64,000 bases of DNA. It comes from Phaeosaccion multiseriatum. Lineage: Eukaryota; Protista; Ochrophyta, other classes. This document shows, piece after piece, positions 22,014-31,313 of the stretch. The notes under the pieces are model-generated. The model was not told where the DNA came from, did not search any database, and was given only the letters and a program-made list of their open reading frames with translations. The stretch lies in contig OZ218956.1 in the NCBI GenBank assembly GCA_965112735.1, positions 62,001-126,000 of the forward strand. The letters are read 5' to 3'. The translations under genes and the position numbers were made by a program. Position 1 is the stretch's first letter. Each line of letters starts with the position of its first letter.

Positions 22014-25000
22014 GGCTGCTGCTTCTCACTCAACAAGTCCGTCCTCAGGCCGCACTTGCTGCGGTCACATGGCGTAGTGCCGTCACACGTCGTGCCAATG
22101 GCATGGCCGACCTTCACCTCAAAGTTCCTGTCACTGGCCAAGTGGTCCCTGTCACTGATGTCCGCCCCCTCCGCCCTGTCCTGGTGCTTGGGCGTGCCCG
22201 ACTCCGAAACAGAGATGGACGGAGACACAGAGGCTGAATCAGAAGCGGCGGACCCGCCATCCTCTGCCGCCCCTTGCCCAGCCTGTTGTGGGTCGCCATG
22301 TCTTCCCTCTGCGGCTTCTAAGCTATCGTTTGTGCTGCCGCTGTTGTCCCGGCCAAAGCCCCCGCTCTCTCGCCCTCTCCCCCCCATGCCCCTTCGCCGC
22401 AGCAGAGGAACTTGTTGGAGCCGAAAGCCGCCACCGCCACCGCCACCGCCACCGCTGTAGCCTGCTTGTACCCCGCCCATGGCCATCGCTGCCATCACCC
22501 CGTCGCGGAGCCCCTCGGCCACTGTGGCGCTGGAGTGGGAGTGTGGCGAGTACCGAGGGAGAGGCTGATGCCCCCCTGGGGTCGTCGCTGCGGCCTTGGG
22601 CGTGGGGGTTGACACGGAGCTGAAACTGCCCACGCGGGTGGGCGCGGCATAGCACGCACTGAGATCAGCCTCACTGCATGGAGCAGACAAAGGAAGGAGA
22701 GGAGGGGCGGCGGCAGTTTGCGGATTGGATTTGGCAGATAAAGCTCAGACATGCATGCGCCCTGCTCTCCACCCCTCTATATCGTGCACCCTCTGTTCTG
22801 TGCCGCTCGTACAAGTCCTCCCTCCTCACCTCCATTCCGGTACGTCTATCTCGTTGTTGATGATGTCCCCGGCCGTGAGCAGCAGCGAGCCGCAGCTTCG
22901 ACAGCAGTAGATCTCCTCCATGGAGCTCAGAGGGAGAATCAACTGAGGCGAGGCACCATCACGCAAGAGGAAGGGTCGCGTCGAGTGAGACAGGCGCCGG
23001 AGTAGTGGACAAGGGGGTGGAGGCAGACGGGCAGACCACAGAGAGACCCTGTCCAAGGGGCAGCCTCCAACCCCTCTACAGCAGCAGTATCGCCCTACCT
23101 TCATTGACGTGAAGCCCGGCCTGGACAGCCTGATGTTGGCAGGTCGCGGCATCTTCATATCGAGAAAGTTCGGCGGCACATTGCCGCCATTGCTGCACCC
23201 TGCCCCCGCCCCTGCTGCTCCTGCTGACGCCCCTGCTGCTGCTCCGTCCCCTCCTCCCCCGCCCTCTTCTGACACGCTGCTGCTGTTGCTCCCGCCGCCG
23301 CCAGCGACTCCGCTGTGTGGTAAGGCGGTGTGGGTTGAGTTGGGGTTCGGAACGATGCCCACTCCCCCGCCCCCTCTGCTTCGTGGAGAGCGGGACCAGC
23401 GGCCCTTGGGAGAGCGGGGAGGTGCCACCACATCGCTGGAGCGCGGCGTGGACGAGGGGCTCAGGGCCGCTCCCTGAACAGAAGAGATGAGACGAGCACC
23501 CGACAGAAGAGGGACAGGGGCAAGAAGGATGGCAACGTTAGTCCCCTTTAGATAGGAGGGAGGGGGCCCACAGACAGACAGACAGGCAGACAGCCGCATC
23601 TCCATGTCGTACAGCCTTATTCCCTCCCCTCCTCCGAGCCTCACTCCCTCCCCTCCCCTCCCCTCGCCACGAGCAACGCACGCGCCCCCCTCCCCGGACA
23701 TGAGTCAAGCAAGAGTCAAGCAAGAGGCAAGCAAGAGGCAAGCAAGAGGCAAGCAGACACACACTTGTCTCACCTGCTCCGAGTCGCCCGTGCTCCCCTC
23801 GCTCGGCCGCCGCCCCCCGCCCCCGCACCCACTCCCGCCGCTGCCCTCGTAAGGGTGGCGGGGAGACTTGGTGTCAGGACCCCCACCCCCACCTCCCACC
23901 CCCGCGCTCATCTTAAGGTTATACATCTGGTGCAGATGCAGGCGCAGCATCATCTGGTGTGACCTGAACACGTCGTGTCCGGCGGCGGAGAAAGCCCTCA
24001 ACTGCTGCTCGAAGCCTTTGTTGACCGACACCACGGGCCGCACGGCTCGTATGCTTGCGATGGCCTGCTCGTAGCTTACATTCTGCGTTGACATCAGGTA
24101 TGCCACCAGGAAGGCTGCAGATGGGAACGAGGGAGAGAGGGGGAGAGGGCAGGCTTTGAGTCGCCTCTTTCGTTGTTGATTGGCTGGCACCATACCTTTC
24201 GTCTAAAATGCCCTGCTACGATGAAGGTGTAGGTTTGGGGGTTGGTCCTTCCTTCCTTCCTGTATGACTGACCTGCCGACCTGGACCTCCCCCCTGCGCA
24301 GTGCACGAGCAACCCCCCCTTCTCGATGCCCGCCTCGATGAAGATGTTGGCTGGTCCGATGGCGGACAGCAGGTTGGCACCCTCCTTGTCCCGCAAGTCA
24401 ACACTGAAGTACGTGAAGGAGCGCGGGAAGGTTGGCGGGAGACCGGACGCGTTGAGAACCTAGAGGAAAGGAAGAAGACGGAGGGAGGGCCGCCAGGGGG
24501 TGGGGGTAAGGGTCGTCATGATGGTTGGTTGGTTGGTTGGTTGTTAGAGCAAGCATAATCAGTAAGTGGGTGGGCGAGTCACGCATGGGGTGCCTCGCCT
24601 GGCCAGCTGTCCTCCTTCCTGCCCACTCGCTACTCACATGCGTTATGCCCCGCTCGTGCATACCCTCCTGGTTGAAGGCCGCGTGGATGGAGCCGATCCA
24701 CACTCGGTCCATTACCTGCGCCGGCACATTGTCCTGTACAGTGTGCAGAGGGGGGGCAAGCAGAGGACAAGCGGAGCATGAGGCGTGCTGTGCTGAGCTG
24801 AGCATCACAGGCAAGCCTTCCCCTGTGCTGAGCAGAGCATCACAGGCAAGCCTTCCCCTGTGCTGAGCATCACAGGCAAGCCTTCCCCTCATACTCCACG
24901 CCCCCGCGACAGCAGCCGTGGCTGGCATACACCAAGGTGCGCTGGTGGGGATCCCCCCGCCAGGAGATGAGCCCTCCCCCCCAAGACTCGTCCAATGACT

Positions 25001-25754
25001 TGTGCTACACGGCACAATCTCGCGACAAGAGGCAGCGCAACAGAGAGAGCGGAGACGGCATCTGCACCGCCAAATGTGAGTGCCCCGCGAGGTGCTTCCC
25101 CTCCAGCTTCCCCCCTGTCCCCACCCCCCCCTCGTGCCTCACGGAGGATCAAAGCCAGTAGGAGAGGGCACACCGCTGCTGAGCACCACCCAACAAGCCT
25201 TCTTCAACAGCTGATGCCTTTGTCAGCTTGGTGAGGCGTCCCCAGCCACAGTAACAGACACGCACAGAGCAGCTCCGCTGTCGTCTGTCTCTACCGCCTC
25301 CACGATGCCCTCTCACCCACCCGCACTCTCGGGACGAGACGCAGAGGAAAGGCCAAGCAAGGCCGCGACTAACGGCATCGCATCGCACCCCGAGCTGAAA
25401 AGAGCGGCCAAAGAACCCTCGTGCACTACACCGCGGCCACACTCTTTCCCAGACATGTGCATCGCCTTGTCCTTGGGCGTCCCACCCTCTTCCTCTGTCG
25501 CTCTCTCCCAATGGAAGCGCCGCAAACCCGCTGAACACGCGCCCAGGCTGAAAAGCGGAGTCCCCAATCCAGCAGCACAACACTTTCATTTCTCATCTTC
25601 GTCTCTCGCACCCCCCCCCCCCCTTCTCCGCGCGTATATGTCTTCCCGCGGCACACTTGAGAGTGTGGTTGAGGAGAAGCTTGTGACGTACCTGCACGAG
25701 ATCGGGCTTCAGAGAGAGGTCCAAGTTGGCCCTGGGCCGGCGTGGTCCGCTCAT
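19668..25754 (-). CDS. Dual-specificity phosphatase, DUSP12/YVH1-like, with a split and degenerate C-terminal Zn-binding domain, about 10 exons
   Basis: RVWIGSIHAA..ERGITH|VLNAS, catalytic LVHCAGGRSRS|AAFLVAYLM, RPVVSVNKGFEQQL; C-terminal YCCRSCG, YLQWM, IKCPNSACGVRLGSWSW, SRVD. The first exon (25754-25692) is inferred from a CAG|GTACGT donor with matching phase and is less certain. Confidence 0.82.
24796..24889. repeat. Intronic tandem repeat, about 30-35-bp unit x3 (GAGCATCACAGGCAAGCCTTCCCCTGTGCT)
   Basis: Directly visible in the first intron of the phosphatase gene. Confidence 0.85.
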
Positions 25755-27122
25755 AGTGCGCTCACTGGGCTGCACGCTTCAAACGAGTTCGTCTACGCTG
25801 TGCTGTGCCAAGCGTACCGTTGTACCGGTACCGTTCCACGCAAAAAGCGATACGCAACATGGCGGGTGGGGGCAGAGGCGGAAGCCACAGACAGGAAGGA
25901 GGAGGTTTGTGAGGAGGAGGGGGGGATGGTCCAGGAAGGATCACAGTAAGAGAGGCGGGGGGTGTGTTGTGGAGCAGAGCAGAGTATGAGGTAGGAGCAG
26001 AGCATGCGAATAAAGATGTTCTCCCTCATTCCCTCAAGGTCTAACAGAGGAGAGGGGCGGGGGCAGAGAGAGCATTGAAGCACACATAGGCCTTTACTCA
26101 CCCTGGTAAAAGCAGCAGAGACGCAGGCAACACACATTGCAGCGGAAGCGCCGGCCAACCCTCCTCCCCACAACTTGGGCGGGGCCTCCGATAGCTGCCT
26201 GCTGGCAGGGGGGCTGCAGACGGAGAGACCCCCGAAGAAAGAACGGCAATGAAGAGTCTTACTCTCTTTCCTGCTCTCCACCTCTCGTATCCTTGAATCA
26301 ACGAAGATGCCTTCCCTGCAGTCCTCGTCCCCTATGGCGCAGTAGCCCACCCTCCCCGTTCCCGCCTCTCCCTCTGCACGCTACCCTAGGAGGAGAGGTA
26401 TAAAAAAATTACGTAATCTTATTCTTGGTCAAAGCCCTGGCCGCGGGTTTAGGGAAGAGCCTTTGAGAAGATTTTTCGCTGACATAAGAGCCGTTGGGCT
26501 TTTTCGCGCCATCTCCCCCCCTCACCTTCTCCCCTCCCCTTTAAGTGCTTGCACCGCTGCTGTCCTTACGTTGCCTGCTCTTCGACTGCTGCTAAGGTGA
26601 GGAGTGCGCGAGGGATTCTGCTGGTGTGGGATAAGGAGCATTGCGCTGGCTGGGGAAGTGGCGTCTTGAGTTGTCATTTACAAAAAGGGGGAAAAAGGGG
26701 GAAGAGGAAGATGATTCATTTGTCCAGCAGCAGCAGCAGCAGCAAGCAGAGCAGCAGAACAGAGGCGAGCATGAATGAGAGATTGGGTGGAAGGGCTGGT
26801 GACAGGTCGTAGGCTGTACATGCTGATGGGGGCCACGGGAAAGACGTAAAACAAAATTGAGTGCCCTGTTCAAACACGAGCACGTGACAGCCCGAAGGAG
26901 GAGAAGGACAGAGTGGAGCAGCGCAACTCCCGAGTGACGGTCGTATCACGTAGCTATATGTGTGCTTGATCCGTGTGAGAAATGAATGCATTGAGAGGTA
27001 GACACCTGGCTTTTCGAATGCTCACAAGCACATTCCCAATTCCCTCTCCCTGCCTGCAAACACAAACCCACGCCTTGCTCCTCCCATTTCCTTGTTTGTT
27101 TGCTGCACAGGGGTCTACAACG

Positions 27123-27521
27123 ATGTTGAGCCCTTGCCGCGCGGAAGCTCCTGGGAGTGGCCCTTGCTCGCCGCCCTCCACGCGCACAACTGGAGGCGCA
27201 GCTACCGCTGTCTGCACCCCTAAGAACGGGGCTGAAGCTCCCGAGACGCTGGCCGAGAAGCTGGCTAGTATTACTTTGCCCCCCGCCCCAGCTCTCTTCT
27301 CCGGGCGCGGATGGCAGCCCTCCACGGATAGCAATAAAGAGAACATGCACCCGCTCAGCGAAGTGTTTGTGGAGACTGGGCTGTCACGAGGAGCGAACAA
27401 CAAGGGACCCAGGAAGACAGGGAGCAACAAGAAGCTGCGGCGACAGCCCCTTCAGGACATTACAGCTGTGTTGGCCCTGGGGCAGGGCAGTGGGGGGGAT
27501 CTCGCGGAGGACGATGCATAA
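27123..27521 (+). CDS. Small disordered protein (132 aa) with a KEN box and a D-box; putative APC/C substrate or regulator
   Basis: ATG lies just after a pyrimidine-rich acceptor (..TTTGCTGCACAG, about 27110), with a candidate 5'UTR donor AAG|GTGAGG at about 26597. Motifs: SNKENMHP, RQPLQDIT, and SP/TPK sites. AT-rich 3'UTR converges on PRP31. Confidence 0.65.
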   Translation: MLSPCRAEAPGSGPCSPPSTRTTGGAATAVCTPKNGAEAPETLAEKLASITLPPAPALFSGRGWQPSTDSNKENMHPLSEVFVETGLSRGANNKGPRKTGSNKKLRRQPLQDITAVLALGQGSGGDLAEDDA

Positions 27522-27785
27522 GCAGCCAGGCACAGAGAGGGAGAGAGAGGCTTGGGGATGAGCGGGCTTGACGACAGCGCCTTAAGTGGCGCTGTCCTTC
27601 CGGGACACCCCTACTCACGTGACTCATAAGAGAGAAGAGAAGATACACCACAGGGTGCAGAGCACGTTTCTACTTGATAATGTTATTATTATTTACACGC
27701 GACCTTGAATAGTGCTTCACCGTACTCCGATCGTGTCTTGTCATATTCTTCATGCAAGCAGATGCCCTGGACTAAGGACTACGGA

Positions 27786-31313
<3,528 letters not shown>

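Follow-up and report, generated by a model that had tools for sequence, protein, structure and literature searches.

A 132-codon open reading frame (ORF) on the forward strand of a 64-kb stretch of Phaeosaccion multiseriatum DNA (27123..27521; positions are those of this whole stretch, hereafter referred to as the window) may represent a real, lineage-restricted small gene, the disordered and probably nuclear 132-residue product of which would carry working APC/C degrons, a reading to which we assign a probability of roughly 0.36. In its C-terminal half, the predicted product would present a consensus-grade KEN box and then, 32 residues on, a D-box preceded by a basic patch. The analysis shows the open frame with its motifs, its biased codon usage and a fold prediction devoid of structure, and the ORF is put forward here as a candidate lead for a cell-cycle protein, not as a discovery.

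The initial annotation of this region had described a 132 amino acid ORF on the + strand together with a set of short motifs, all of which could be located at the positions given for them. The ORF starts with an ATG at 27123, with an A at position -3, and ends with a TAA at 27519-27521, and could be either a complete gene in one exon or the final exon following a 5′ intron. In its amino acid composition, the translated product resembles a protein (R 5%, W 1, C 3, K 7, N 6). The stop-free frame stretches further back to 26979, and a 179 amino acid version starting from an ATG at 26982 was considered but rejected, as the 47 extra codons have a score of -0.38, corresponding to non-coding codon usage. 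A pyrimidine-rich tract ending in CAG (27063..27110; + strand) is located 12 nt before the ATG and is in phase 0 with the ORF. Similar tracts are found at the 3′ splice sites in the neighboring PRP31 gene, where the acceptors are all YAG following C/T-rich tracts, and as such a 5′ intron or an upstream exon could precede the ORF. The non-coding character of the 47 upstream codons and the acceptor-like CAG at 27110 together suggest that the coding sequence starts at 27123, or that the ORF represents a last exon or follows an intron in the 5′-UTR.

By sliding codon score, no + strand exon with a coding signal was observed between 25000 and 27100. A 27-codon ATG-initiated stretch at 25638-25718 (+), helical-looking and with a codon score slightly above zero, shares its phase with the acceptor-like site at 27110. 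While joining these two sites is feasible on paper, it would require a weak donor (GTCCAA) and an intron of 1.4 kb, and this gene model was given no weight. A downstream continuation of the ORF was ruled out, with the PRP31 coding sequence ending at 27838 on the other strand.

Codon usage was evaluated by means of a log-likelihood score, for which eight confident exons from the window served as training set. At 0.043, the candidate ORF surpasses the other five frames, and a sliding version of the score identifies it as the only sustained positive coding signal in the 2.8-kb gap in which it is located, with no coding signal on the - strand beneath it. Random ORFs generated with a third-order Markov model score -0.163 ± 0.069, which places the candidate three standard deviations above their mean, with 0.2% of them reaching its score. 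True coding chunks, scored on a leave-one-out basis, average 0.20 ± 0.195, with the candidate falling at their 27th percentile, and the coding-to-random density ratio at its score is about 15. The signal is unevenly distributed along the ORF. The first half, rich in Pro, Ala, Ser and Thr, scores -0.14, while the second half, which harbors both degrons, reaches 0.23, where coding sequence averages 0.20-0.27, and has a GC content at the three codon positions (GC1/2/3 = 0.62/0.45/0.70) typical of exons in this DNA. We consider it probable, with moderate confidence, that the candidate is a real translated gene.

An alternative, which we regard as nearly as likely as the reading with working degrons, is that the ORF arose by chance in intergenic DNA, whether promoter or 3′-UTR, that it is untranslated and that its motifs are coincidental. 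Its size is uninformative, since random sequence with the composition of the window (third-order Markov) yields ~113 ATG-initiated ORFs of 100-300 amino acids per 64 kb, and an open frame of these dimensions is thus no evidence of a gene. The non-coding scores of the first half and of the 47 upstream codons are in keeping with a chance ORF, as is the overall score, which lies well below the 0.35-0.50 of the PRP31 exons and is equaled by several non-genic ORFs in the window. The latter comprise antisense and low-complexity ORFs, some of which score as high as the candidate, indicating that the realistic null distribution is broader than the simulated one. Against a chance origin stand the 0.2% of random ORFs that attain the candidate score and the density ratio that accompanies it, the superiority of its frame over the other five, and the rarity by chance of its motif pair in extended form.

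This rarity was determined in 150 simulated windows produced with the third-order Markov model, in which ATG-initiated ORFs of 100-300 amino acids were searched. The minimal pair, a KEN and an R..L..[ILVM] in the same ORF, was encountered 0.087 times per simulated window (8% of windows), while KENxxP with a D-box was encountered 0.013 times per window and KEN with RxxLxD[ILV] in none of the 150 windows. Extrapolated to the genome (~1,100 windows), the minimal pair would be expected ~95 times by chance and the extended pair well under once, although the extended pair was defined after the sequence had been seen and its rarity therefore overstates the case. The real window contains 344 stop-free stretches that reach 100 amino acids, and KEN occurs in two of them, the candidate and one located in a large real gene.

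The KEN box of the candidate (S-N-K-E-N-M-H-P, aa 70-77; 27330..27353, + strand), recognized in the initial annotation as NKENMHP at 27333-27353 (aa 71-77), has an N at P-1 and a P at P+3. Both flanks agree with the extended KEN consensus, in which P-1 is D/N and P+3 (or P+2) is P, and which He et al. (2013, PMC3690534) obtained from 46 validated KEN boxes and rationalized structurally. The D-box-like nonamer (R-Q-P-L-Q-D-I-T-A, aa 107-115; 27441..27467, + strand), the first eight residues of which had likewise been correctly reported as RQPLQDIT (27441-27464, aa 107-114), retains R1, L4 and I7 of the RxxLxx[ILVM]xN consensus and shares D6 with cyclin B, but has an A rather than an N at P9 and a Q rather than a G at P5. 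The KEN box thus precedes the D-box, with 35 residues separating K72 from R107. Immediately before the D-box the translation contains a basic patch (K-G-P-R-K...K-K-L-R-R, aa 94-107; 27402..27443, + strand), which supplies lysines and which, from its residues, may be NLS-like. An acidic/hydrophobic patch with Glu, S-E-V-F-V-E-T-G, is found between the KEN box and the D-box, a further Glu-containing patch occurs in the tail, and only 17 residues remain after the D-box.

The CDK-type SP/TPK sites that had been noted in the ORF are also present, as two SP sites and one TPK. S3-P-C-R (27129..27140, + strand) is the sole site in the candidate with the full CDK consensus (S/T-P-x-K/R), while S16-P (SPPS; 27168..27173, + strand) and T32-P-K (27216..27224, + strand) are minimal sites. 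The earlier description of the product as disordered is consistent with a single-sequence AlphaFold2 prediction for the 132 amino acid product (mean pLDDT: 52.7; pTM: 0.12), which contains no secondary structure, a result that a non-protein would equally give. With no structure predicted, the degrons would be accessible.

The same coding evidence would also fit a real small disordered protein with another function, such as a nuclear or chromatin-associated linker, in which the KEN and RxxL motifs are incidental. Short linear motifs are often false positives in disordered proteins containing K, E and N, the D-box is imperfect at P5 and P9, and no third co-activator contact was found, neither an ABBA/A-motif-like pattern nor an MR or IR tail. 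The ABBA-like pattern searched for in the translation ([FILV]x[ILMVP][FHY]x[DE]), which gave no match, is a simplified proxy of our own rather than a validated model of the Acm1 A-motif. On the other side, both KEN flanks fit the consensus, a D-box with D6 and I7 is located at a workable distance from it and beside a lysine-rich patch, and such a combination is uncommon by chance. We consider an unrelated function with incidental motifs unlikely.

The candidate had been described as an orphan, and this characterization held in every collection searched. No family was recovered from Pfam at E-values up to 1, and NCBIfam was likewise empty. A word-indexed search of 5.8 billion proteins at E-values up to 10 returned no relative, an exhaustive phmmer comparison against 1.84 billion cluster representatives gave no match, an exact-sequence look-up among 15 billion proteins showed the candidate to be absent, and a tblastn-confirmed scan of the JGI metagenomes was also negative. 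In the PDB, the top match falls in a SAS-6 chain, on its disordered N-terminal tail (e-value: 0.011), and was judged to reflect composition and rejected as homology, and no securin is included among the PDB matches at E-values up to 10. The ESM Atlas, searched in all and in named clusters, yielded only unnamed plant clusters at 0.90, with a low recognition value (1289). Such empty searches are expected from a fast-evolving disordered regulator and equally from a non-gene, and the lack of a homologue or database entry and the low Atlas recognition are as such also points in favor of a chance ORF.

A further point in favor of a chance ORF is that no RNA run was found among the public sequencing runs containing the locus, although these runs, four DNA data sets from one sample, speak neither for nor against transcription. 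Their identity as DNA follows from the contigs of these runs, which cover introns, those of PRP31 included, and intergenic DNA alike and contain no splice joints. Contig depth over the locus is flat and single-copy, indicating that the candidate locus is not a repeat. The contigs of one run (X3) contain 1-nt deletions at 27492, in a G-run inside the ORF, and at 25919, 26515, 28543 and 29277. As the other three runs lack them, these deletions are most likely sequencing errors and not alleles.

The gap in which the candidate is located is flanked upstream by a dual-specificity phosphatase gene on the - strand, the first exons of which extend up to about 25000, and downstream by PRP31, also on the - strand, which was mapped by tblastn with four homologues and runs from 31313 to a stop codon at 27838-27840 with at least six GT-AG introns. 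The candidate and PRP31 are convergent, with their stop codons 317 nt apart (27521 on the + strand and 27838 on the - strand). An AT-rich island (27674..27697) is found about midway between the two stops and is possibly a shared 3′-end or polyadenylation region. The TGTAA motif, considered as a poly(A) signal and given no weight, is absent downstream of the candidate on the + strand, occurring there only on the - strand. None of the ORFs in the gap has a Pfam match, and no Rfam family was identified anywhere in the 64-kb window. The closest PRP31 in the databases shares 42-57% amino acid identity per exon (at most about 50% for the protein). This PRP31 is intronless and is located on a 6-kb ENA contig that ends 478 nt after it, and within this contig no ORF comparable to the candidate is present beside PRP31.

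Several additional elements were observed in and around the gap. A single canonical E2F-type site, TTTCGCGC, occurs at 26502-26509 (+), 620 nt upstream of the candidate ATG. The looser TTTSSCGC pattern shows no enrichment in the window (nine found against six expected), and a cell-cycle promoter reading was not adopted. A C13 run at 25608-25622 and a G16 run at 27808-27824, with CT/AG-rich flanks, form an imperfect inverted pair of 23 nt, 2.2 kb apart, which brackets the gap. The possibility that the candidate is transposon cargo was rejected, as the depth between the two runs is single-copy. Depth spikes occur only at the runs themselves while the interior remains single-copy, and the pair thus probably represents low complexity rather than transposon ends. 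A CAG/GCA microsatellite (26724-26757) is located inside a + strand ORF, where it would encode poly-Ser/Gln, and many contigs from other parts of the genome join at this position, which accounts for apparent but false joints in the aligned contigs. A 35-nt unit is present in three tandem copies (24788-24887; 86-97% identity) close to the 5′ exons of the phosphatase gene (- strand). In PRP31, a CAA/CAG run at ~28261-28395 would encode a long poly-Gln tract if part of the last large exon, while a CAG acceptor at ~28252, immediately 3′ of this run, would be just as compatible with an intronic position. A possible terminal intron of 105 nt in PRP31 (27845-27949) is in frame, such that the spliced and unspliced forms would both end at the TGA at 27838-27840.

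Among the known proteins with this pair of motifs, securins had been proposed as one possible identity of the candidate in the initial annotation. Securins (Pds1/Cut2, PTTG1, PATRONUS/RSS1) resemble it in being small and disordered and in having a KEN box before a D-box, and they evolve too fast for sequence searches, the candidate likewise having no detectable relatives. Sequence comparison identifies securin in Metazoa and Fungi only (PMC3195147) and, remotely, in plants and some green algae (10.1101/606285), and in Chlamydomonas a "hypothetical securin analog" is still assumed (PMC9448001). The earlier remark that no characterized equivalent is known in algae of this kind is a fair one in light of these three studies. 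A securin of the alga, that is a pseudosubstrate that binds separase and is destroyed by APC/C-CDC20 at anaphase, would be a special case of a protein with working degrons. It would be consistent with the small disordered product, with the order of the motifs, with the Glu-bearing patch S-E-V-F-V-E-T-G between them and with a family that cannot be detected by sequence outside animals, fungi and plants (PMC3195147; 10.1101/606285).

The layout of the candidate is, however, the reverse of that expected. In the profile common to animal, fungal and plant securins, both motifs, KEN box and D-box, lie N-terminally and precede a long C-terminal part that binds separase and in which an invariant Glu is located within a conserved patch (Cromer et al. 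2019, 10.1101/606285), whereas the degrons of the candidate are C-terminal, at aa 72 and 107 of 132, with 17 residues left beyond the D-box. No plausible + strand exon that could supply the remainder is present before the PRP31 coding sequence at 27838, and there is no Pfam securin match at E-values up to 1. The securin proposal is weakened by these features, and on account of the reversed layout and the missing downstream exon the candidate is not filed as a securin, an identity we deem highly improbable.

A parallel in architecture is provided by Acm1, the pseudosubstrate inhibitor of APC/C-Cdh1 in Saccharomyces cerevisiae, which is similarly small and largely unstructured, with CDK sites and a KENxxP followed by a D-box some 20-35 residues on. 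In the inhibitory region of Acm1, the KEN box at 98 and the D-box DB3 at 119 both engage one Cdh1 propeller (PMC3690534). The spacing between the two motifs is 35 residues in the candidate and 21 in Acm1, close enough that both motifs could engage a single co-activator. Unlike Acm1, with which it shares no sequence homology, the candidate has no match to the simplified ABBA-like pattern and no CDK site over its KEN box. Mes1 of Schizosaccharomyces pombe, a competitive substrate and pseudosubstrate, binds co-activators via a KEN box and a D-box, one of each, that act jointly (PMC3084671). The candidate is comparable in being very small and in having one motif of each type, but there is no homology between the two, and Mes1 is meiosis-specific and fungal.

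The plant proteins OSD1/GIG1 and UVI4 are characterized by a GxEN box and a C-terminal MR tail. They are small and, as with the candidate, contain APC/C recognition motifs, but neither the GxEN box nor the MR tail pattern is present in the 132 amino acid translation, which has no homology to these proteins. The N-terminal destruction region of B-type cyclins has a D-box of the type RxALGDIxN, and the succession of a basic stretch and R-x-x-L-x-D-I in the candidate is similar to this region. The candidate nevertheless differs from B-type cyclins in having no cyclin box, its frame ending 17 codons later with PRP31 located opposite downstream.

With these comparisons in mind, we suggest that the most economical mechanism for a translated candidate may be that of a short nuclear protein carrying a bipartite APC/C degron. 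Solved APC/C-degron complexes provide the analogy, according to which the KEN box would dock on the top face of the WD40 propeller of CDC20/CDH1 and the D-box in the co-receptor that the co-activator forms jointly with APC10. The product would be ubiquitinated on nearby lysines and subsequently destroyed from anaphase to G1, and as long as it is bound to the APC/C, other substrates would face competition from it. CDK phosphorylation of the N-terminal S/T-P sites could modulate this process. Expression of the candidate, use of its motifs and any securin or inhibitor role are what we infer from its sequence features. If the degrons do work, the product may possibly be a plain APC/C substrate or a competitive inhibitor in the style of Mes1 and Acm1, with inhibitors of the latter kind taking a share of this outcome about as small as that of securins. 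It is a long shot, though one better placed than the securin identity taken singly, that with the candidate a regulator of the APC/C resembling securin or Mes1/Acm1 would be known for the first time from a stramenopile-type alga, as a minimal protein of 132 residues with its degrons at the C-terminal rather than the N-terminal end.

Outside animals, fungi and, since 2019, plants, sequence searches do not detect securins or small APC/C inhibitors. The candidate illustrates the reach of motif-only calls in a genome with neither RNA data nor close relatives, and its validation would test whether motif grammar alone can find such regulators. A validated small protein with a KEN box and a D-box would open a way to study how a major algal lineage controls anaphase and, if the proposed reading is true, anaphase control by means of a small disordered KEN plus D-box protein would exist where securin has never been found by sequence.
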